The notes under the pieces were generated by a model that was given only the letters and a program-made list of their open reading frames with translations, did not search any database and had not been told where the DNA came from. Both the position numbers and the translations under genes were made by a program. DNA of 64,000 nt, from the sequence record PV158447.1; one strand, given 5' to 3'. Below, one piece after another: positions 3,244 to 47,907 of this stretch; position 1 is the stretch's first letter, and each line of letters begins with the position of its first letter.

Positions 3244-4042
3244 AACATTAGGGACGGTTCCAATTAGTGTTGGGACCGCACTGGCCGTAGAGGCTCTTCA
3301 GAACACCCCCATGCATCGTTATCAGACTTTCTTGATGAACGTACGCACTCTAGTAAGAAACGCAAGAGAAGCGTTTGAGGAGCTTCCTAGTGAAGCTGAT
3401 TTGACCCAGGCTGTCAAGGAAGACATTATTGGGATAATGGAATACATTATCAGTCTGAAACTGAAAACAGTGTTGGATGTCAAAATCTACTACCCAAGTT
3501 ATAATTCGTTAGCGAGAACATTTCCACTGGCCAAGTTAAAAGAGATGGATCCCAAGAAACTCTTTAAACCCGCTGACCAGAGGAGAAAAGAAATTCTCAT
3601 CTTAGATGATAAGGTGATTAAGAAAACTATCGAAGAGTTTAACAAGTACATCGTACAGGTTGATTGTTCGATTCCGCAGTTTGGTGGAGAAGGTTTAATT
3701 ATCACGCACCACCCTGTTGATTTCACAACCACAGAAAGTTACCACAGGCTCCATCTATTAGAGTCACACACTGGCACGATCAAGCATTACTCATTACTTC
3801 ACACCAAGTTAACTGGCGGGAAAGAAATGCCCAACATGCCACTTAACAAACTCACCATTCAGATTTTTGGTGACAATGCTGTGAACTTCTATTCCCAGAG
3901 TACAGCGGTGAAAAACGAAGTAAAAGAGTTGGCGGCATCAGTACCTTGGAGTTCTGCTTCTACGGTAAGTTTCGTCACATCCTCAATCAGAAAACTTCCT
4001 GGAACATCCCCAGCGAAACCTATCTTATTGAAGATGATTTAA
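3230..4042 (+). CDS. Hypothetical protein, 270 aa, possibly a degenerate PIN/FEN-like nuclease fold
   Basis: Overlaps the sbcD-like stop; fold guess from FLMNVRTLVRN and IITHHPVDF segments only. Confidence 0.6.
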   Translation: MSALRTLGTVPISVGTALAVEALQNTPMHRYQTFLMNVRTLVRNAREAFEELPSEADLTQAVKEDIIGIMEYIISLKLKTVLDVKIYYPSYNSLARTFPLAKLKEMDPKKLFKPADQRRKEILILDDKVIKKTIEEFNKYIVQVDCSIPQFGGEGLIITHHPVDFTTTESYHRLHLLESHTGTIKHYSLLHTKLTGGKEMPNMPLNKLTIQIFGDNAVNFYSQSTAVKNEVKELAASVPWSSASTVSFVTSSIRKLPGTSPAKPILLKMI

Positions 4043-4082
4043 CCAGTTCAATTTTAACTAATTCAAATTAAGGATTTTCAAC

Positions 4083-4841
4083 ATGTCTAACCAACAACAA
4101 TTCCAACGCCGCCCCGATACCATGTTCAACGATTTCCGTTACCCGATGCCCGCTTCTTCTGCCCCCGTAGAAGGCGCCAAATACCCAGCTCGTTGGACTT
4201 GGAGTTTCGGTCTGGATGGCAAGATCTATTTCAAAGTGAATGACGGGGTGTTCGGTAAAGATGATCGCAATGCCAAGCTGAAAGAAGTACATCTGTCGAA
4301 CATGGACCGTAACGCTTTGTTCAACCTGATGAAAGAAGCGATCAATGATCCTAACTTCACCCGTGGGATCTATTATGTCAAACAGATCACCTTCGGTAAT
4401 GGCGGGCGTCTGAATGATCATGCTTCTACTCTGGGTTCGTTTACCGTCATCCGTACCAAAGAAGGTGCAATCAACGTAGGTTACACTAAAGGTACCTACA
4501 AGGTGATGTTCGAATTCAAATCCCCGTACGAATCCATCATCATGGTTCAGAAAGATGGTGAAGCTGTCGAAGACAAAGGGTTGATGTCCCGTGTCTACGT
4601 AAAGGCTTTCATCGACTATAGCCAGAAGTTCTGCGATCAGTACGAGTGGGATAACTACAAACCTCGTGAACGTAGAGACGCCAATGGCGGCGGTAACGGC
4701 GGCGGTGGCAATAACTGGGGCGGCGGTAATGGCCGTGGTAACGGCGGCGGTGGCAATAACTGGGGCGGAAACAATAATGGCGGCGGTAATAATGGTCGTC
4801 AAGATTCTGCTCCCGATTTTGATGACGATATCGAATTTTAA
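4083..4841 (+). CDS. chmC: ChmC-like phage-nucleus RNA-binding protein (Whirly-type core plus Gly/Asn-rich tail)
   Basis: Directly upstream of gp68-like and PicA-like genes as in phiKZ/Goslar; beta-rich core and G/N low-complexity C-terminus as described for ChmC. Confidence 0.7.
   Translation: MSNQQQFQRRPDTMFNDFRYPMPASSAPVEGAKYPARWTWSFGLDGKIYFKVNDGVFGKDDRNAKLKEVHLSNMDRNALFNLMKEAINDPNFTRGIYYVKQITFGNGGRLNDHASTLGSFTVIRTKEGAINVGYTKGTYKVMFEFKSPYESIIMVQKDGEAVEDKGLMSRVYVKAFIDYSQKFCDQYEWDNYKPRERRDANGGGNGGGGNNWGGGNGRGNGGGGNNWGGNNNGGGNNGRQDSAPDFDDDIEF
4692..4768 (+). repeat. 32-nt direct repeat x2 (45-nt period) encoding GNGGGGNNWGG
   Basis: ggtaacggcggcggtggcaataactggggcgg at 4692-4723 and 4737-4768. 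Confidence 0.9.
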
Positions 4842-18485: not shown

Positions 18486-19790
18486 TTATTTTAAGGCGAT
18501 ATCCAAATCAATTGTCACTGTCTTCAATTGAGAGGTATGCATCGCCTTCATTCTTGTCAAGAGATATTGAGTAAATATAAGAACGACTTCGGCGGAGAGA
18601 CGTTCTTTGATCTTACCCAGAGCTGTGCCAAGACAAGTAGAGCAGATATTGTCGTCAGGCTGTTGGCAGTATTGCGCCACTCGCATCTGAACTATCTCTC
18701 CAATTTTCGGACCTGTCTCATCTTCAAACAGAACAGGTTTCCCATCAACCATGTAGAACGAGTTGATCCAACCTTTCCTGTTATGCTTATTGATGATAAC
18801 AGATTCTGTTCTCGGTGTTCCACAATCCCCTTCAATGGCGAATATCCGGTTAGTTAACAGAATAGCCAACTTAACTTCAGCACCACCTTCACCCGTGGCA
18901 TTACCTCGGTCATAGGAAGCAGAGATCGCAGTGTTAATGTATTCAGGGAAATGATCCATATCCCACCCTTCGTTCAGGGACTTACGAAGGAGAGTATACT
19001 TACCTGTATTGAAATCAGGAACCATATCAAAGATAATGAACATCTTCTTACGGGCGTTATCAATGAACTTGCTATTGATAAAGAAGTCTTTAGAAGGCCC
19101 GTTATATTGAATCTGTGCATCCAGAGCAACAACTTGGTCAATGGCTTTGGCGACAGCAACAGGATCATCCAATTTCCCTTGGTCTTCCAATTCCTTTAGG
19201 AGCTTATCCCGGAGTTGTACGACTTCTGGGTGGACTGTGAACATGTCGATGGAGGATGCTTTCACAAAGACTTGGTTCATCCCTTCCAGGTAATCCAAGT
19301 TCTTGGAGATCTGGAGGCATTGATCTACGGAAGCTTTCCCTTCTGGAATGGTTTCATTTCCTTCCGGATTGTCCACTATGATTCCTTCGATCACACCTTT
19401 GATGGTATTTCCGGTTATCTTGGCGTTGATGTAACTAGCAGCAGTCCCTACTGATTCCATTAGTACAACAATGTTGAATAGGAATAGTCCCACGGTAGTT
19501 TCGAAGCTTTCTTGAATCCAACCATTCACTTCTGAACTGACGGTAAACTTGTCGTTCTTGTGAAAGAGAGGACGTTCGTAGTTATCATGTTCTACGACAA
19601 CGCGTTCATCCCCACGGTAGAAGTAAACTTCCCGTTTTTCATCATTCCGAATGAGTGCGTAAGGGATTTTCTTTAATCGCTCATTGTTCTCTTTGTTGTC
19701 ATGAACAAGAGAGAATATAGAAAGTAAGAAACTCTTCTTGGTATAAGCGCGATGTTTGAATGCTTCAAAGAGATAGTCAAAACGATTCAC
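18486..19790 (-). CDS. Virion RNAP beta-prime subunit fragment (phiKZ gp80-like)
   Basis: DCGT and C-x(6)-IC-x2-CLG zinc site; TQYLLTRMKAMH trigger-loop-like end. Confidence 0.85.
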   Translation of the reverse strand: MNRFDYLFEAFKHRAYTKKSFLLSIFSLVHDNKENNERLKKIPYALIRNDEKREVYFYRGDERVVVEHDNYERPLFHKNDKFTVSSEVNGWIQESFETTVGLFLFNIVVLMESVGTAASYINAKITGNTIKGVIEGIIVDNPEGNETIPEGKASVDQCLQISKNLDYLEGMNQVFVKASSIDMFTVHPEVVQLRDKLLKELEDQGKLDDPVAVAKAIDQVVALDAQIQYNGPSKDFFINSKFIDNARKKMFIIFDMVPDFNTGKYTLLRKSLNEGWDMDHFPEYINTAISASYDRGNATGEGGAEVKLAILLTNRIFAIEGDCGTPRTESVIINKHNRKGWINSFYMVDGKPVLFEDETGPKIGEIVQMRVAQYCQQPDDNICSTCLGTALGKIKERLSAEVVLIFTQYLLTRMKAMHTSQLKTVTIDLDIALK

Positions 19791-20665
19791 ACTGAAATCT
19801 CCACTTCGTTGAGTAGTGCTTGAGCATTGTAGATACTGTCGATGGATTCACCGAACTGTTCCGCAGCAGCTAAGAACTGGGTTTTAATTTGTTGGTCTGT
19901 CAGATTCCCAATAATCATCAGGGCAAGGAGTTCTTTTAAATAACGATTGGTGTCGTCAACAAGGATCATCCCAAGTTCATTAATGAAAAGGTTCGTGAGA
20001 GGCTCTATATCGAGTCCTGCTGCACCGCCTTTGGTAATGTGGGTCTTCGCTAGGGTTCCGTCAAGAAATACCTTGTTGGTCACTATGCGGCGTCTGAGCG
20101 CAGGTTCCATGTAGTCAGTGTCGTCTTGCCCCAGGATGTTCAGACCGATCAGGATTCCTTTGGTCACATTAGGGGCGACATCATTAATCAGGTAACAGAA
20201 GTTCTCGGTATCAAAACCAGGATCCAGTTTCTCAAGGAGTTTGATGAAACGATCTTTGGTATCCAGCTCTTCGTCTTCCAACACACCCAGCATACCAATG
20301 ATATCTTCCATTCCGTCCAGTTCATAGATACTGTTCAAAATGAAGTTGAGATCTTTAATGGAGTCCGGTGTTGTGTAATCCAAGTCGATAACGATTCCGA
20401 TCATCTGTAACGCGTCGATCAATGTCTCGATCAGATACTTACGAATGTAAGCTTGTTTATTCACCACCTCCATACTTTCATCTATCAGTACGTTAGTGAT
20501 AGTGGTATCCAGGAAATTGTCCGGGAAGGTGATGGTGATTAAATTGTACGCATCGTTGAATAGTATAGCTGCCGCTGGAGTACACGTGGCTGTGAAGTCT
20601 AACCAAGTTTCTCCCAAATTGCCCTCGGCCAGGTTCACACCTTTAAGGTCGATAATGTCACTCAT
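19787..20665 (-). CDS. Acidic conserved hypothetical protein
   Basis: GGAG RBS before ATG at 20665; ATGA/GTGA-type overlap with the vRNAP gene. Confidence 0.8.
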   Translation of the reverse strand: MSDIIDLKGVNLAEGNLGETWLDFTATCTPAAAILFNDAYNLITITFPDNFLDTTITNVLIDESMEVVNKQAYIRKYLIETLIDALQMIGIVIDLDYTTPDSIKDLNFILNSIYELDGMEDIIGMLGVLEDEELDTKDRFIKLLEKLDPGFDTENFCYLINDVAPNVTKGILIGLNILGQDDTDYMEPALRRRIVTNKVFLDGTLAKTHITKGGAAGLDIEPLTNLFINELGMILVDDTNRYLKELLALMIIGNLTDQQIKTQFLAAAEQFGESIDSIYNAQALLNEVEISV

Positions 20666-20703
20666 TACTTTCTCCAATAATCCGTTCTATAAGGGGTCAT
20701 AAC

Positions 20704-21375
20704 ATGACTAAGAAAATTAAACAAAAAGTAGCTAAAAAGATTGCCCAAAAGCGTGCTACTCGTGGTCTTCGCAAACACCAATCTCAGAAAGGTATCGGTA
20801 ATTTCAAGGTAGCTCGTTCTGATAAATTTGTTAAGAAACTGGATAAGCTCCACGCTGCGATGGTTCGTAACGGTCTGGAAGATCCTGTTGAGTTTATCAA
20901 GAACGGTGGCAAGATCGATAACCTGAAAGAGCTCGATTACAAAGGTCTGGTAGGTGATGTGAAAGAACGCATCGGTGATGTGTTCAAACTCTTCTCTTAC
21001 AACACCATGGCAGCGGCTCTGATTGAAGCCAAAGTCTTTGAACATGAGTTCAAGATTGATCTGAAGGAGATCGGTCTCCAACTGGTCTCCATGGATAAGA
21101 CTTACCAAGGTCTTGGTGAAGCCATGAAACGTTCCAAAGAAGACTTCGCTATTGAGATCTTTGATCTTGCTGGAGAATTGGAAGATGTTTCTGCTAAACT
21201 CTACCAAGAGATCGAAAACCTGGAACCTCACGAATCCATCATGGGTCGACACCTTGAACATCATGCTAAACTCTGGGCCGACGAAGAACAGAAGCCCATT
21301 GAGAAAGGTTACAAAGCAGTGATGGAATCCGTCGCTTATGCTTTCCTCAACAAAATCACTAAGGAAGTTGTGTAA
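20704..21375 (+). CDS. Hypothetical protein, 223 aa, basic N-terminus, helical
   Basis: AAGGGG RBS; strongly biased codons; TAATG coupling to the next gene. Confidence 0.8.
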   Translation: MTKKIKQKVAKKIAQKRATRGLRKHQSQKGIGNFKVARSDKFVKKLDKLHAAMVRNGLEDPVEFIKNGGKIDNLKELDYKGLVGDVKERIGDVFKLFSYNTMAAALIEAKVFEHEFKIDLKEIGLQLVSMDKTYQGLGEAMKRSKEDFAIEIFDLAGELEDVSAKLYQEIENLEPHESIMGRHLEHHAKLWADEEQKPIEKGYKAVMESVAYAFLNKITKEVV

Positions 21376-23009
21376 TGTCCGAACAAGTTCAACAACCTGA
21401 GATCAAGAAGGTACGACCTGTTGATTCTCTCCGCAGCGCGGTGCTGTTAGGTAAAGAAGTAGAAGGAGCTCAGTATGGGCTCTCTCTTTTCCTGGGGTCC
21501 CTCTCTGAACAACACGAAGCAATCTTCGAGACTGCCGTGATCTTTGCTCGTCTGTCACAAATGCGCACCGACCAAGCACAAGGCATCGAAGTTCCGCTTC
21601 ATCTGATCAACTCTGCTGAAGTGAAGTACAACGAGTTGAAAGAGAAACACTTCGGGGAAGTGGACCAAGAAGACCTGGGTAAGATGTTGATCTCTTACTT
21701 CTCCTTTGTTAAACATCGCCGTGACAACTTCCTCAGCAAAGATGAGTACAAAGAGTATCTGAACCCTGAGAACTTTGTGAACACTGTTCCTCAGGTCAAG
21801 ATGGGTCAAATGCCTCTGATTGCCGCTCGGGCAGCAAAGGCAGAGAAAGCAGCAACTCTTCGTGATCGGATGCGTTCTTCTGTGATGAAAGTAAACGGGA
21901 CTCCTGACTCGTTCACTATTCTCCTGATGAACTCCATCATCATGATCCGTATCAAAACCCCTACCAACTGGGAAGTGGTCAGTTTGATCAACCGAATTGC
22001 TCTGAAACTTCAAGGCGCTTCCTATGGCACTCGTTACCGTATGAACTCTCTCCACTTGGAGCGCGCTCTGATCTCTAAAGTTCTGGTGGAATGGATTCTG
22101 GAACGTACCACCTACTGGTCTGTTGATGACATCGCGAGTTCTGACGAACTCCTGACGGTTATCGACAAAGCGGATCTGAACATCCTCAGTACCGCTATCC
22201 TGGGCTTGGCTTCGCCCAAAGGTGTTCCTTACCGTCTCCACTGCCTGGCGAATAACTGTAACTATCAGGAAGACATGATGATTGATGCGAAAGAACTCAC
22301 TGTTCTTGACCACACTCGTTATCCTGAAAGTTACTGGGAGATGATCTCCGCGATTGTCAACACGGGTAAGCGCTACACCATCCAAGAACTCAAGGATGCT
22401 CGTGTTCCCTACATCGGCCATGATGGTAAAGAAATCGAGAACAAAGTAACTGTCGAAGACGGTTCGATCGTTCTGGGTCTTTCTTCTCCGTATCTGAGCG
22501 AATACTTCAGTGTGTACGAAACGGTCGCCGAATTCCTGAATAAGGAAATCCGAGAACTGGCTGTTCAGTTCCCTAACGACAAAGAGTTTGCTGAGAAACG
22601 TAAAGAACTGCAAAGCTCTTTCCGTCTGATCGACTACGTTCAGTATTTCGAAAGTTATACTCGTAAAGGTGACCCTCTCAACGAAGATGAAAAGGATGAA
22701 GTGATTCTTCGTTCCGAAGATCCTGCACAGTTTGTTCAGGGTTTGATCGACATGTTCAACGAAGATGAAGACCTGTACGCAAATGCGATCTCTCAGGTTC
22801 TGAAATCTGTTCCGAAGATGTCTTACACCTTTACTGGAATCATGGACGACGAATGTCCTTCCTGTAAGAAACGTGTGTCCGAGAACGTCCAGGAGATCAA
22901 CAACGGGTTCACCCCGATTGATCCTATTCTGAATTTTTTCGACCAAGCCCGAACTATCGTAATGCGCCGGAAAGACATCGGACAATACCAAGAGGAACTT
23001 CTTTCCTAA
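21375..23009 (+). CDS. Putative tail/baseplate hub assembly chaperone (T4 gp26/gp51-like C-terminal region), 544 aa
   Basis: HCLANNC and CPSC cysteine pairs; ends ...ILNFFDQ at a slippery site. Confidence 0.55.
   Translation: MSEQVQQPEIKKVRPVDSLRSAVLLGKEVEGAQYGLSLFLGSLSEQHEAIFETAVIFARLSQMRTDQAQGIEVPLHLINSAEVKYNELKEKHFGEVDQEDLGKMLISYFSFVKHRRDNFLSKDEYKEYLNPENFVNTVPQVKMGQMPLIAARAAKAEKAATLRDRMRSSVMKVNGTPDSFTILLMNSIIMIRIKTPTNWEVVSLINRIALKLQGASYGTRYRMNSLHLERALISKVLVEWILERTTYWSVDDIASSDELLTVIDKADLNILSTAILGLASPKGVPYRLHCLANNCNYQEDMMIDAKELTVLDHTRYPESYWEMISAIVNTGKRYTIQELKDARVPYIGHDGKEIENKVTVEDGSIVLGLSSPYLSEYFSVYETVAEFLNKEIRELAVQFPNDKEFAEKRKELQSSFRLIDYVQYFESYTRKGDPLNEDEKDEVILRSEDPAQFVQGLIDMFNEDEDLYANAISQVLKSVPKMSYTFTGIMDDECPSCKKRVSENVQEINNGFTPIDPILNFFDQARTIVMRRKDIGQYQEELLS
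22934..22940 (+). promoter_or_regulatory. Candidate -1 ribosomal frameshift heptamer T TTT TTC
   Basis: In-frame X XXY YYZ heptamer; the -1 frame opens just after TGA at 22919-22921 and runs to 23455. Confidence 0.7.
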
Positions 23010-23455
23010 CACCTGCTGAAGACAACAAACGCCGGAGACTGATTGAAAGGTCGGTCTCCTTTCACCATGCACTTTGTCGAGTACTTGATGTTTCGTTAAG
23101 CGAAGTGTTTAAAGGTGAACATAAAGCGTATATGCTTCAGTATGGTTGGGTTGACGAGAAGACCAACATGGTAGAGGGGGTTAGGTACAACCCCAATAAA
23201 ACAGATTACTATCACTTCTTATCAGCCCAGTCAATAGGAGATATGTTCGGGTACAACGAATACGACCAGATCATGCCACTTAAAGACTTCATGGAAGCGC
23301 CTGTAGACGTCATAGAAGATCTTTTGAATGGGGTCGCTACTGGTAGACGCCGAGCTAAGGAAGAAGCTGAGAGAGCGGCTAAGAACAAGCTTGGTAACAA
23401 AGGTAATGACCCGATGAGTATGATTCCCAAAAACCTTCTTAAGGAGTTCAAATGA
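22940..23455 (+). CDS. -1 frame extension (gpT-like part); ORF-track GTG start at 23105 is probably not the real start
   Basis: No stop and no ATG/GTG/TTG between 22922 and 23104; no SD before GTG 23105; predicted fusion 693 aa. Confidence 0.65.
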   Translation, partial: RPSPNYRNAPERHRTIPRGTSFLTPAEDNKRRRLIERSVSFHHALCRVLDVSLSEVFKGEHKAYMLQYGWVDEKTNMVEGVRYNPNKTDYYHFLSAQSIGDMFGYNEYDQIMPLKDFMEAPVDVIEDLLNGVATGRRRAKEEAERAAKNKLGNKGNDPMSMIPKNLLKEFK

Positions 23456-24000
23456 AGCCCCTCGATAAACCGAATGTCAGTACCAAACCTTCCGCTGTAG
23501 AGCAACAGGTAGAACTGGAGAAAACCCAAGATAAATCTCTGGGTGTTCCCACTACCGCTCACAAGGAGATCGGTCCTGCTGATATTCACAAGAACACGAT
23601 CAATACGTTTGTGAAGTTCCTTGCTGGAGAAGCTCACAATGCTTCTCTGGAAGAACGCACTCATTTCCAATGCACTTTCATTGATGAGATCCCGAAGATC
23701 CTGTCTGTGAAGTACAGCGTAGTAGAATCGGTGATGGACCACTTCCTGGTTCAGATCGCCGAGAATCGTCAACTGTTCGGTATGAACGAAGCCATGGGAC
23801 ATCTTTACAACGTAGAGAAAACCAAAGCCCGTTCTATGGAAGTGATCACTCGTTACAAGCAGTTCCTGAGTTTCATGATCATGTTGTCTGATAACGCACG
23901 TAACCGCACTCGGTTTATTGCTGGGTACGATGTGACTAAACTCTGTAACAGTTTTGAAGCGACTGCTGGTCAGAATCTTCATAACTATATTCATAGTTAA
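23452..24000 (+). CDS. Hypothetical protein, 182 aa
   Basis: AAGGAG RBS, ATGA overlap. Confidence 0.8.
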   Translation: MKPLDKPNVSTKPSAVEQQVELEKTQDKSLGVPTTAHKEIGPADIHKNTINTFVKFLAGEAHNASLEERTHFQCTFIDEIPKILSVKYSVVESVMDHFLVQIAENRQLFGMNEAMGHLYNVEKTKARSMEVITRYKQFLSFMIMLSDNARNRTRFIAGYDVTKLCNSFEATAGQNLHNYIHS

Positions 24001-26689: not shown

Positions 26690-27757
26690 ATGCAAGCAGT
26701 AGACATTGTAATCGAAGACCAAGAAGTAGAAGTGCTCGTAGAACGTCCTGCGCTGCTCTCTGAGCAACTTCAGCTCGAAGATGGTACCAATCTGTGTAAT
26801 TACGAAAGTAATCTCCAGAAGAAGTTTGAGCACGTTAAAAAGGAACTTGAGAAAGATCCCAATTACGTCGCTTACGACTGGATGTACTACGTGAATAAGT
26901 TTGGTGGAATTGTGAAGCGGGAAGCAATCATTTCTACTAATGGTGATTTCATGACACTTCGTCCTAATAACAAAGTGTATGTGAGAAAGGGAATCCGGAC
27001 ACGTTCCGGTTATTGGGAGATTCGTCTCTACAAAGACAACCCAGGGAATACTCCAGGACATGATATCTTCCAACTCCATCGAGCAGTAGCCGCGACGTTC
27101 GTAGCACCACCCACTGGGTCCTGTATTGTCTTTAACAAACTAGAAGCAAATCACGAGGACGGTAACAAAGATAATAACCACTTCTCCAATTTGACCTGGA
27201 TGACCAGAAAGGAGAACCTGAATCACGCAATTGATAACGGTTTGATCAAATCTGGTATTGCCAACGAGAATACCATTCCGCTTATGGGTGAAATCACCAT
27301 GCCCTGTAAGTGGAAAGGTCGGAAGTTCATTGTGGCAGGTGACCGAATGTTCCTTGAGAGTGGTTTGGTCCGACATTCTATTGTCATTCGTATCTCCGAG
27401 CAACGGATTATATACGGCTGTCTTTGGTCGTATCCTACTCAGGAGGAATTGTCGGAAGTTCCGATCGGTATTCCCGAAGGGTATTTGGATTATTATCGTG
27501 CTAATAAGTCAGATGGTGATTCCAAAGTAAAACCTGTTATCGGAAAGATACTCAAAGGTCCCCACAAGGATCATGAGTTCTACCTCCTAGGTGCCACTGA
27601 AGTAGCCGCTAATGGCTTTGTACAAGCTTGGGTATCTAAGGCGGCCAGAAAGATCAAACCCGATTACAAGGGGATAGAGTGGCGATATGGTACACATGAA
27701 GAAATAGAAGGGATGGAGAGAGGAATAACTGAAGAGATGAAAGCAACAATTAAATGA
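26690..27757 (+). mobile_element. Free-standing HNH homing endonuclease with two C-terminal DNA-binding repeats
   Basis: LHRAVAATF...NHEDGNKDNNHFSNLTWMTRKEN; ATG 26690 after AAGGA. Confidence 0.9.
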
Positions 27758-46036: not shown

Positions 46037-46971
46037 TGAATATCGAAAGTAACGCGTCCATCCCAGGATGGTCACAGCACGCACCTGAGACCGATATCAC
46101 TGGGTTGGGGACGGTGGGTTCTGGCTCCACAATGTGTCCAGACAAATGCGTAGAAGGGTTTGTTGAAAACGAAGAGGAATTCAAGCACATTGAAACCATC
46201 CTGGAAGGTTACGGTGAATACCTGTCCAAGGAAGAAGTAAACGAAGCTTCTGTCTCTGGTACAGAGGCTTATGCAATGTCCGCACTTCAGATCTATGGAT
46301 ATGAATCCTGGATGGATAGTATCAAGAAGGGTGCTGAAAGTGCTTACAACGCGATTATAGCAACTCTGAAGAAACTCAAGGACTTCTTCTTTGGTGACGG
46401 TGAGAAGCGTGTTGAGGAAGCTGACAAGAAGGCAGGTGATAGTTTAGAAGCCATGGGTAAGTTGGATCTCAACGCCCCAGTGAAAGATGAAGCAGCCGCC
46501 AAGAACCCCCTGACTTTCTTTAAGGGTATTCAAGAGTCTGCTGAACTTGAAAAGGTTTACGAGAAATATCCTGCTGTCAAGACTGCTTTCGAAAAGATCG
46601 AAGGTTCTGTCAGTCGGGTTAAGAACTCTGAAACAGTGGGTCAGTTGGGTGCGGTATTCCAAGACATGCGTAAATCGGCATCGGCAGCTGGTGCTGCGGT
46701 TTCTTCTTCTCTGAAGAAAGCGCTTGATAGCGCCGAGAAGAAAGCTAATGAGATTCGTAATCCCAAAGGTGTTCCCGATGACGCTACTGCTGAAATGAAA
46801 GCGGCTGTTAAGGAAGAGCACAAAGAGACCGTTGCTGAAGCCAGGGAAGAAACTAAAGAGTCTCGAATCCTTGCCAGTCTCCAGAACAAGATCACCACGA
46901 TGCTCAATGCGATCTCTTCCAATGCCAGTTCTGTTAAAGGCGAAACCAAAGAGTCTGAATTTAAGGGGTGA
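46036..46971 (+). CDS. Putative internal head protein related to the 24093/25109 paralogs
   Basis: SGTE and YGYE|SW...LKKLKDFFFG. Confidence 0.7.
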   Translation: MNIESNASIPGWSQHAPETDITGLGTVGSGSTMCPDKCVEGFVENEEEFKHIETILEGYGEYLSKEEVNEASVSGTEAYAMSALQIYGYESWMDSIKKGAESAYNAIIATLKKLKDFFFGDGEKRVEEADKKAGDSLEAMGKLDLNAPVKDEAAAKNPLTFFKGIQESAELEKVYEKYPAVKTAFEKIEGSVSRVKNSETVGQLGAVFQDMRKSASAAGAAVSSSLKKALDSAEKKANEIRNPKGVPDDATAEMKAAVKEEHKETVAEAREETKESRILASLQNKITTMLNAISSNASSVKGETKESEFKG

Positions 46972-46974
46972 TGA

Positions 46975-47907
46975 ATGTCGTTCAAAGAACAGCTGATTCA
47001 AAAACTTTCCCCTAATCAAACTTTTGTTAAGGTATTTGCTAAGGACAGTGACAACACAGTCGTTGACTTACTGGAAGATAATCTCCCTAAACGTTACCTT
47101 CTAGAGAAGAAAGATATTAAAACGTTCTTTTCTAAACCACCTGTGTTATCTCTCCCAGTAGGGAGTACTGCTAATGATCTTTACAATGCGTTCTCAGAGC
47201 GTTTTGGACTAGGTCTGGTAAAAGGTGTGGATTACGATGACGGATCACTCCTGGAGCTTTACAGGGACTTTCAGTATGTTACCTTAACAATGAGTTTTGA
47301 TTCACTGGGTTACAAAGGTTCGATCGGGGTATTGGTGAATGATATTCAATTCACACTCCAAGGTAAATTGGAGCGTAACCTAAATGGGGCTGATCAACAC
47401 TATCTGTTCTCCAATGGTAGAGTTCGAGCCTATCTTTGTTCTAAGGTATTCACTTCTACTGTTAATCTTTTCTCTTCCAATAAACTCTCTAGACAGTTTG
47501 TCTCTGAATTACAAGCGCAGATCAAAGAAGCATTGGATATTGATTTCCGATACGAACTAGAAGCAGGTATGGCGATTGGACGTTTCAATGACGGTCTCAG
47601 TGATTTGATCCTCTTTAGAACTAGTTCTGGTTATGAATACTTTCTTCGCTTCAGTTCTTCTGTAGGTGACCTTCCTGTTTTGGATTATTTTTCTAAATCA
47701 GATTCCATTCTATTGGACGATGGCTCGAAAGAGTTGTTGTCTGGGATGGAAGTGATCAGTGCGGAGAAACCGGGTGAGAAAAGTGGGGAAGAGTTTATAT
47801 ATAGCGATTACGAAGTAATCAAGCATAATCCTTCTTTATTTCCAGAGGAGAATACTCCACAAGAGAAAGAATTGGAAATAGAATCAGAAGAAATCACTCT
47901 AGAATAA
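46975..47907 (+). CDS. Hypothetical virion protein, 310 aa
   Basis: AAGGGG RBS; shares a YKG-x-(L/I)-x-VLV module with the 44952 protein. Confidence 0.7.
   Translation: MSFKEQLIQKLSPNQTFVKVFAKDSDNTVVDLLEDNLPKRYLLEKKDIKTFFSKPPVLSLPVGSTANDLYNAFSERFGLGLVKGVDYDDGSLLELYRDFQYVTLTMSFDSLGYKGSIGVLVNDIQFTLQGKLERNLNGADQHYLFSNGRVRAYLCSKVFTSTVNLFSSNKLSRQFVSELQAQIKEALDIDFRYELEAGMAIGRFNDGLSDLILFRTSSGYEYFLRFSSSVGDLPVLDYFSKSDSILLDDGSKELLSGMEVISAEKPGEKSGEEFIYSDYEVIKHNPSLFPEENTPQEKELEIESEEITLE

Follow-up and report, generated by a model that had tools for sequence, protein, structure and literature searches.

When one gene of a phage genome ends in a run of T's and a second open frame, displaced by one base, continues far beyond its stop codon without a conserved start of its own, the question arises of whether the two frames are two genes or one gene decoded in two ways. 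This is the case at positions 21375-23455 of the 64,000-nucleotide stretch of record PV158447.1 analysed here (the window), from the nucleus-forming jumbo phage AhC3_1. The first-pass annotation of this DNA proposed a programmed -1 frameshift that would yield a pair of chaperones similar to lambda G/GT, in a locus that annotators would have split into two hypothetical genes. The observation was confirmed in every stated particular, whereas the interpretation was only partly supported: the recoding event is very strongly backed by comparison with relatives, while membership of the lambda G/GT family was not supported, and the suggested likeness to the T4 gp26/gp51 hub chaperones received modest support.

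The slippery site and the layout of the locus

The features of the locus are the following.

18486-20677, minus strand: divergent neighbours, a virion RNA polymerase beta-type subunit (18486-19790) and a cg19/phiKZ gp079-like virion protein (19787-20677).
20704-21375, plus strand: upstream neighbour (ORF156, 223 aa), positional equivalent of phiKZ gp078 and part of the conserved gene block.
21375-23009, plus strand: gene A (ORF157, 544 aa), the 0-frame product.
22242-22865, plus strand: span holding four Cys codons of A (C290, C295, C494 and C497), an inferred, probable metal-binding site.
22919-22921, plus strand: TGA that closes the -1 frame 12 nt upstream of the heptamer, the 5' limit of the slip window.
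22922-23455, plus strand: whole -1-frame open stretch (gene B region), of which annotated ORF158 is only 23168-23455; from about 23105 onward it encodes a conserved domain of about 110 aa (phrog_19747) and a Lys/Glu-rich tail.
22934-22940, plus strand: slippery heptamer T_TTT_TTC, in register with A (codons Phe521-Phe522 plus the last base of Asn520).
22934-23009, plus strand: dual-coding overlap, in which the 0 frame encodes the C-terminal helix of A (from the predicted model) and the -1 frame the first 25 residues of the extension.
23010-23104, plus strand: poorly conserved linker in the -1 frame that no canonical start codon can reach, yet coding.
23132-23134, plus strand: candidate internal ATG for a separately initiated short B, a possible second route that is not conserved family-wide.
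23452-24000, plus strand: gene C (ORF159, 182 aa, phrog_14374), whose start overlaps B's stop (ATGA) and has a strong Shine-Dalgarno (SD); it is conserved directly downstream of B in most loci.

Gene A reads CTG AAT TTT TTC GAC, the heptamer is in X_XXY_YYZ register and 22 codons follow TTC before the stop. The -1 frame stays open after its upstream TGA to the TGA at 23453-23455 (177 codons), and the proposed product lengths of 544 and 693 aa are arithmetically right. The first canonical start in the -1 frame is the GTG at 23105, which lacks an SD, with a duplex of -0.6 kcal/mol against -6.6 to -8.7 for neighbouring real starts (SD duplexes were scored with a generic bacterial anti-SD 10-mer). 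One correction is needed, as the ATG at 23132 has an SD-like AAAGGTGA upstream (-6.9 kcal/mol, long spacing), so that a separately initiated short B is not excluded in this phage. Among 60 in-register heptamers in ORFs of at least 100 aa in the window, this one is the clear outlier, with 173 open -1 codons from the site running 446 nt past the ORF stop, and the runner-up is a shadow ORF. The comparative evidence given below puts the pattern far beyond chance.

Selection on the -1 frame in relatives

The locus was compared in 28 isolates spanning most genera and in 22 IMG/VR loci (50 loci, about 45 genomes); two alignments were too divergent for the locus scan. All 50 loci have an in-frame TTT-TTN pair, a T-run of 6-8 and gene B in the -1 frame, with the -1 frame open across the pair and an extension of 156-184 codons, without exception. 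The heptamer is in register in 26/28 isolates and in all 22 IMG/VR loci, whereas in PhiPA3 and FLC9 the base before the T-run is G, so only the A-site tRNA could re-pair fully. The stop that closes the -1 frame lies 9-192 nt upstream of the pair in relatives and is always upstream. The first Phe codon is TTT in 28/28 isolates although TTC is preferred (P about 3e-14 over 22 lineages); the only two TTT codons of RSL2's gene A, for example, are at this site, and other F-F pairs in A start with TTC. The probability of B being in the -1 frame in all was estimated at about 3e-11. The preceding codon ends in T in 26/28 isolates while its amino acid varies among N, T, S, A, G and V.

Coding selection on the -1 frame was found to begin at the site. 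After A's stop, over 34 codons in 17 genomes, there are 0 stops in the -1 frame against 31 and 63 in the other two frames, and differences at codon positions 1/2/3 are 19/21/43 (p = 0.0016) in parts lying upstream of any start in either genome of each pair. Synonymous-codon identity in A is 0.76 from the pair onward against 0.49 gene-wide, with 0 of 505 windows as high, and is 0.42 in the 12 codons just upstream. Directly after the pair, Pro is at position 4 of the -1 frame in 25/28 genomes and at position 6 in 22/28, while the 0-frame residues at the same bases vary. For the -1 stretch as a whole, phrog_19747 was matched with E 2.3e-21 over residues 66-155, and tblastn matches start at residue 1-4 in distant relatives; no Pfam or PDB relative was found.

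The first-pass annotation had named loss of the heptamer or a well-formed independent start for B in orthologs as grounds for rejection, but orthologs keep the heptamer and lack a conserved well-formed independent start. The first canonical start lies 6-87 codons after the pair and is not positionally conserved, and the SD strength of the best candidate per genome has a median of -4.1 against -5.9 for real starts; Churi has no start for 87 codons. At the column of ATG 23132 a Met is present in 12 of 17 closer genomes, but this start is absent or lacks an SD in many others. A conserved stimulatory RNA structure was not detected, as the RNAalifold consensus fold reached only -1.9 kcal/mol with almost no covariation, 14 single-sequence folds had z between -0.8 and +1.5, and no Rfam match was obtained; no SD-like element is present upstream of the site. 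Such flanking stimulators are common at -1 frameshift sites but not obligatory. A small hairpin near A's stop varies by one-sided changes only, has no compensatory changes and lies more than 50 nt from the site, and the conserved bases there are better explained by dual coding. A search for natural in-frame A-B fusions among the 150 best of 387 family clusters found none.

Identity and predicted fold of gene A

Gene A is Chimalliviridae core gene cg18, an ortholog of phiKZ gp077, PhiPA3 gp074, 201phi2-1 gp136 and EL gp47, annotated as hypothetical. The assignment rests on the PhiPA3 annotation note and the supplement of Prichard et al. 2023 (PMC10299810), on an end-to-end match to phrog_4585 (E 1.8e-81), on orthologs in 73 and 235 phage records, and on tblastn chains from AhC3_1 to RisingSun/EL and then to PCH45 and PhiPA3/Churi/SPN3US, with conserved synteny; the upstream neighbour holds the same position in all loci. 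As the first-pass annotation had supposed, the phage belongs to the nucleus-forming family and the locus is split in the records into two hypothetical genes, with B starts that differ from record to record. The 'ZipA-like cell division protein' label of some records found no support in Pfam, PHROGs or fold search, and Goslar 'gp77', a capsid decorator under another numbering, is unrelated. Word-index protein searches, run twice, returned only 11 close relatives. No prior description of the frameshift was found in the literature.

A first structure model from 11 sequences was poor (pLDDT 52) and was not used, whereas the AF2 model retained for A has pLDDT 90.2 and pTM 0.89, with helix 517-543 at about 86-95. 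Across 92 family members, C290, C295 and C494 are invariant and C497 is at least 90% conserved. PDB sequence searches with A and B profiles and a PDB fold search were empty. Foldseek against predicted viral structures (BFVD), however, gave at least 6 targets annotated as baseplate hub assembly chaperone or protein (prob 0.97-1.00, E 2e-3 to 7e-3, target TM 0.37-0.55), among them a gp26 hit at TM 0.52; these are predicted, not solved, structures. Faint sequence hints point the same way, PF12322 (T4_baseplate) and phrog_150 ('baseplate hub') being the only recurring named families, but they remain below curated thresholds: PF12322 matches 2 of 92 members (best E 0.048) with no hit for the window protein, and phrog_150 matches 2 of 92 (best E 2e-4).

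Interpretation and comparison with known systems

In the preferred reading, to which a probability of about 0.8 is given, most ribosomes read through Phe521-Phe522 in the 0 frame and finish the 544-aa protein, whose last 22 residues complete a C-terminal helix, while a fraction slip back one base on T_TTT_TTC, with both tRNA-Phe re-pairing, and continue in the -1 frame to 23455. In the resulting 693-aa protein the end of that helix would be replaced by a poorly conserved linker of about 30-60 residues, the conserved domain of about 110 residues annotated as gene B and a charged tail. Sequence comparison shows that the site, the frame relation and coding selection on the -1 frame starting at the site are conserved across the family; that the shift is ribosomal rather than transcriptional, its efficiency and that a trans-frame protein is made are inferred, all the evidence being comparative. 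Also inferred, and only tentatively, at somewhat less than even odds, is that A is a distant relative of T4 gp51/gp26-type baseplate hub assembly chaperones, so that the pair A / A-B would act in tail or baseplate morphogenesis in a fixed ratio, the logic used by lambda G/GT, with the B domain as the added binding module. The locus lies beside virion RNA polymerase genes and not tail genes, which speaks against this function. A still bolder possibility, considered unlikely, is that cg18 and its frameshift product are the long-missing tail/baseplate-hub assembly chaperone pair of nucleus-forming jumbo phages, T4 gp51/gp26-type and lambda G/GT-type chaperones being two branches of one ancient morphogenetic device of two products in a fixed ratio; the B domain would then recruit the structural partner, and an unrecognised core protein would be added to every member of the family.

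Of the alternatives, transcriptional slippage is the least improbable, though unlikely. The same fusion protein would be made if the phage or host RNA polymerase added one extra U in the T6-T8 run in a fraction of transcripts, and this would agree with the invariance of a T-run of at least 6 rather than of a strictly canonical heptamer (PhiPA3 and FLC9), with the lack of a detected stimulatory structure and with the unusual multisubunit RNA polymerases of these phages, whose slippage behaviour is not known. Runs of 6 are, nevertheless, short for known polymerase slippage, and in 23 of the 28 isolate genomes the second codon is TTC or TTA, so the run is not extended although a synonymous TTT was available, which fits a heptamer better than selection for run length; the base before the run is T in 26/28. 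Initiation of B as a separate small gene at an internal, non-canonical or reinitiation start, with the long open stretch and the T-run as by-products of constraints on A, is very unlikely. It is favoured by phrog_19747, which models B as a protein of about 120 aa, by the semi-conserved Met at the start of the conserved domain, by the poorly conserved linker and by SD-like elements there in some genomes (for example AhC3_1 -6.9, Survivor -9.8 and N1M2 -7.1); in a few genomes with a plausible internal start, AhC3_1 among them, B may also be made alone. It does not explain, however, the absence of -1 stops, the codon-position bias upstream of every start, the invariable -1 frame and constant extension length measured from the pair, the retention of TTT, the synonymous constraint starting exactly at the pair or the conserved Pro codons, and in D9, pEt-SU, Kc263, RisingSun and Churi the first start lies inside or beyond the start of the conserved domain.

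A sequencing or assembly error in the homopolymer, or a recent inactivating mutation, is the most remote alternative. Homopolymer runs are error-prone on some platforms and one relative (vB_PQ1) is clearly a poor assembly, but about 45 independently sequenced genomes from many laboratories and platforms show the same two-frame layout with runs of 6, 7 or 8, the 0-frame tail after the pair is itself conserved and modelled as a confident helix, and both frames show purifying selection. That A / A-B is a true lambda G/GT homolog grown large is also very unlikely, in spite of the shared two-product logic and of tape-measure and tail-assembly chaperones among the weak Foldseek hits, since these hits are not significant (E 0.4-0.8, prob 0.07-0.35, about 100 aligned columns) and no Pfam or PHROG chaperone family is matched.

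A family-wide recoding event would correct the annotation of hundreds of genomes in a group of phages that is intensively studied and whose core genome has been catalogued, and would add a previously unseen core protein of about 690 aa. It also gives a concrete candidate for the tail or baseplate assembly chaperone that has not been identified in these phages, and a natural example of -1 slippage on a pure U-run with no evident stimulator, conserved across very deep divergence. In the core-genome list of Prichard et al. (PMC10299810), A appears as a hypothetical protein (Goslar gp081, PhiKZ gp077, RAY gp267) and is treated as a single ordinary ORF; the frameshift is not mentioned in the main text and, in the part of the table consulted, no entry falls between cg17 (phiKZ gp075) and cg18 (gp077), which suggests that B is not listed as a core gene.

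The lambda gpG/gpGT-type tail assembly chaperones (Xu, Hendrix and Duda 2004, cited in PMC9024508) share with this locus a -1 shift on a slippery heptamer near the 3' end of the upstream ORF that gives a short and a C-terminally extended product from one start, an arrangement conserved although the sequences diverge and often split by annotators. A, however, has 544 aa and not about 100-150 aa, its predicted fold does not match significantly, its heptamer is a pure T-run, its role in tail assembly is inferred only, and it is not placed between tube and tape-measure genes, its neighbours being a virion RNA polymerase subunit, cg19, a helicase and, in relatives, DNA polymerase, with no tail gene annotated nearby. 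The locus thus probably works like G/GT, with two C-terminally different products from one gene, without being a member of that family. T4 gp51 and gp26 are tabulated as hub assembly chaperones, and gp51 is needed for assembly and absent from particles (PMC3004832); A is likewise not named among virion components in the Goslar structure paper, where neither gp81 nor gp82 is mentioned, although this is only indirect evidence. These proteins are the best named relatives of A by predicted fold, but A is about twice as long, the matches cover about 270-360 alignment columns, and a frameshift is not known to have been described for T4 genes 51 or 26. In E. coli dnaX (tau/gamma) and the IS3-family orfA/orfB, -1 slippage of bacterial ribosomes on an X_XXY_YYZ heptamer likewise sets a fixed ratio of two proteins sharing an N-terminus, but those sites have strong flanking stimulators (an upstream SD-like element and/or a downstream hairpin or pseudoknot), none of which was found conserved here, and in dnaX the shifted product is the shorter one.

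Conservation of the Phe-Phe pair and of the −1 frame

The sequence examined belongs to Aeromonas phage AhC3_1 (PV158447.1, 232,884 bp; window base 1 is record base 124001). The first-pass annotation had described a T-run near the end of a long gene followed by an open −1 frame, and every element of this description was found to be present. The features concerned are the following.

21375-23009, plus strand: gene A, encoding 544 aa, annotated in GenBank as ORF157, hypothetical, and reading CTG AAT TTT TTC GAC at the site
22919-22921, plus strand: TGA closing the −1 frame, which is then open to 23455
22934-22940, plus strand: heptamer T_TTT_TTC in X_XXY_YYZ register, followed by 22 codons before the stop of A
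23105, plus strand: GTG, the first canonical start in the −1 frame
23132, plus strand: ATG, a candidate internal start for a short B
23168-23455, plus strand: ORF158, hypothetical, the only part of the −1 stretch (gene B) annotated in GenBank

Of the 60 in-register heptamers found in ORFs of at least 100 aa within the 64-kb window, this one was the clear outlier, with 173 open −1 codons reaching 446 nt beyond the stop of the ORF. The runner-up, with 107 open −1 codons, was located in a long antisense ORF (46641-46985, minus strand) that is a shadow opposite real plus-strand genes and is an artefact; a second antisense shadow ORF of this kind was found at 21555-23072 (minus strand). Homopolymer runs were scarce in the window, with only seven runs of T ≥ 6 and three of A ≥ 6 on the plus strand, which makes the retained T6 of gene A stand out more.

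The conservation of the site in related phages, which had been proposed as the test of the frameshift, was evaluated next. A tblastn search with the whole −1 stretch matched relatives of only 33–46% identity, with matches starting at query residue 1–4 and always overlapping the end of their gene A. The comparison included 28 isolate genomes covering most genera of the family (Chaoshanvirus, Ferozepurvirus, Ludhianavirus, the Petsuvirus/OBP group, N1M2, Kc263, AH04, RisingSun, EL-like, Miami, pTD1/Aphrodite1, PCH45/SPLA10, PhiPA3, SPN3US, phiKZ-like Churi, RSL2, FLC9 and Deimos-Minion), together with 22 IMG/VR loci, about 13 of them uncultivated. Pseudomonas phage vB_PQ1 (PQ516283.1) was left out, since its gene A region is split into several small annotated ORFs (three pieces by tblastn) and the record, with 488 features in 184 kb, looks like a low-quality assembly with many frame disruptions. 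In every locus compared, with no exception, gene A presented an in-frame TTT-TTN pair near its 3′ end, giving a T-run of 6–8, gene B was in the −1 frame, and this frame was open from a stop upstream of the pair to the end of B. The extension measured from the pair was 156–184 codons, although the tail of A after the pair varied from 39 to 138 nt. The base before the run was T in 26 of 28 isolates, whereas the amino acid of that codon varied among N, T, S, A, G and V; PhiPA3 and FLC9 have G at this position.

The first Phe codon of the pair was TTT in 28/28 isolates, even though TTC is the preferred Phe codon in most of these genomes. In RSL2, the only two TTT codons of gene A are those of the pair, and other Phe-Phe pairs in gene A begin with TTC. 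Based on the codon usage of each genome, P was about 3e-14 over 22 lineages, and the probability of B being in the −1 frame in all 22 was about 3e-11; both values assume independent lineages, which is reasonable at 13–55% protein identity but remains an approximation. In the 34 codons after the stop of A, 17 genomes presented 0 stops in the −1 frame, against 31 and 63 in the other two frames. When the comparison was restricted to the part upstream of the earliest canonical start in either genome of each close pair, differences were distributed 19/21/43 at codon positions 1/2/3 of the −1 frame (p = 0.0016). Synonymous constraint was determined on a codon alignment of 13 genomes as the fraction of identical codons among identical residues of A, and was found to be 0.76 from the pair to the stop of A, against 0.49 gene-wide and 0.42 in the 12 codons just before the pair, with none of 505 equal-sized windows reaching the observed value (maximum 0.63). 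Dual coding therefore begins at the heptamer. The first residues after the pair point the same way, since Pro is found in the −1 frame at position 4 in 25/28 and at position 6 in 22/28 genomes, whereas the 0-frame residues encoded by the same bases vary widely.

Start sites of gene B and mechanism of the probable shift

The first canonical start of B was located 6 to 87 codons after the pair and was not conserved in position, falling at or inside the conserved domain in D9, pEt-SU, Kc263 and RisingSun. The annotated start of B also differs in almost every GenBank record of the window and the related loci, a symptom of the missing start codon: AhC3_1 uses ATG 23168, Churi could be given only a 45-aa stub, and Deimos-Minion has a 182-aa ORF that starts inside gene A. 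Shine-Dalgarno pairing, scored against a generic bacterial anti-Shine-Dalgarno 10-mer, had a median of −5.9 kcal/mol for the real starts of these loci (A, its upstream neighbour and C, the gene following B), whereas even the best candidate per genome for B had a median of −4.1 kcal/mol, and many genomes had none. Nevertheless, a few genomes do present a fair internal candidate, such as ATG 23132 of AhC3_1 (−6.9 kcal/mol, though with long spacing). A short B made on its own may therefore coexist with the fusion in some phages, but it cannot explain the conserved upstream part.

No conserved RNA structure was found after the site: RNAalifold gave −1.9 kcal/mol with essentially no covariation, fourteen single-sequence folds had z-scores between −0.8 and +1.5, and no match was found in Rfam. 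No SD-like element precedes the site either. The last ~20 nt of A (22990-23009 and equivalents) are almost invariant at the nucleotide level in the 15 closest genera and contain a small predicted hairpin, but this shows no covariation, and the conserved bases are explained by dual coding rather than by an RNA element.

Ribosomal slippage on the U-run is the simplest reading of these results. Transcriptional slippage cannot be excluded from sequence alone, but is disfavoured because in 23 of the 28 isolates the run is kept at TTT TTC or TTT TTA rather than lengthened to TTT TTT. A sequencing error is excluded by about 45 independent genomes and by the conservation of the 0-frame tail, which is modelled as a confident C-terminal helix. 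The probability of recoding at this site was estimated at about 0.9, and that of specifically ribosomal recoding at about 0.8, on evidence that is entirely comparative. The conserved pair, the constant frame relation and the coding constraint on the −1 frame were shown by sequence comparison, whereas the fused protein, the ribosomal nature of the shift, the function suggested for the products and the metal site mentioned below are inferences.

Predicted properties of the two products

Gene A is Chimalliviridae core gene cg18, with orthologs Goslar gp081, PhiKZ gp077, RAY gp267, PhiPA3 gp074, 201phi2-1 gp136 and EL gp47, and is listed as hypothetical. It belongs to a block (18486-24000 in the window) conserved across the family, comprising the virion RNA polymerase beta-type subunit (phiKZ gp080), cg19 (phiKZ gp079), a gp078-like gene, A and B, and followed in most members by the 182-aa gene C (phrog_14374). 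Free-standing HNH endonuclease genes, probably mobile homing endonucleases, were found at different places downstream of this block in AhC3_1 (26690-27757, ORF163) and AerS_266 (3697-4272 of its extracted locus, L004). The family of A comprises 387 clusters at 50% identity, in which nearly all members end at the same profile position, and none of the best 150 carries an in-frame B. The Pfam search gave no match, and PHROGs returned two function-unknown families.

The AlphaFold2 model of A, obtained with a 92-sequence alignment, had a pLDDT of 90.2 and a pTM of 0.89, with the pair at the start of helix 517-543. A fold search of the PDB found nothing. Against predicted viral structures, the named hits following the jumbo-phage orthologs were "baseplate hub assembly chaperone", "baseplate hub assembly protein, bacteriophage T4-like" and "baseplate hub subunit" (prob 0.97–1.00, E 2e-3 to 7e-3, target TM 0.37–0.55), with a T4-type gp26 at TM 0.52, whereas hits to tail or tape-measure chaperones were not significant. 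The only recurring named sequence families were PF12322 (T4_baseplate; 2 of 92 members, E 0.048) and phrog_150 "baseplate hub" (2 of 92, E 2e-4). Gene A carries inherited labels in the records of ZPAH34, LAh10, RisingSun, Joad and KPN8, of which "putative ZipA-like cell division protein" found no support, while "putative baseplate protein", used in KPN8, agrees with the fold result. Four cysteines of A (C290, C295, C494 and C497; codons within 22242-22865) are invariant or nearly invariant in 92 family members, in two pairs about 200 residues apart, and a metal site, probably for zinc, is inferred from this conservation alone. Gene B encodes a conserved domain of about 110 aa and a charged tail, with no relative found in Pfam or the PDB.

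Relation to lambda G/GT and T4 hub chaperones

No description of frameshifting in phiKZ-like phages was found in the searchable literature, subscription-only papers not being covered, and the main text of the core-genome paper (PMC10299810) does not mention one. The first-pass annotation had suggested a G/GT-like chaperone pair and a likeness to T4 gp26/gp51, and this interpretation was only partly supported. The locus probably works like lambda G/GT, a −1 shift near the 3′ end giving two products with a common N-terminal body and different C-termini, but it is not a member of that family by size, fold or gene position. A morphogenetic chaperone function remains tentative, somewhat less likely than not, and rests on comparison with predicted rather than solved structures. 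T4 gp26 and gp51 are tabulated as hub assembly chaperones, and gp51 is absent from the particle (PMC3004832). By fold, these T4 gp51/gp26 hub chaperones are the best named relatives of A, at a level that supports relatedness without proving it.
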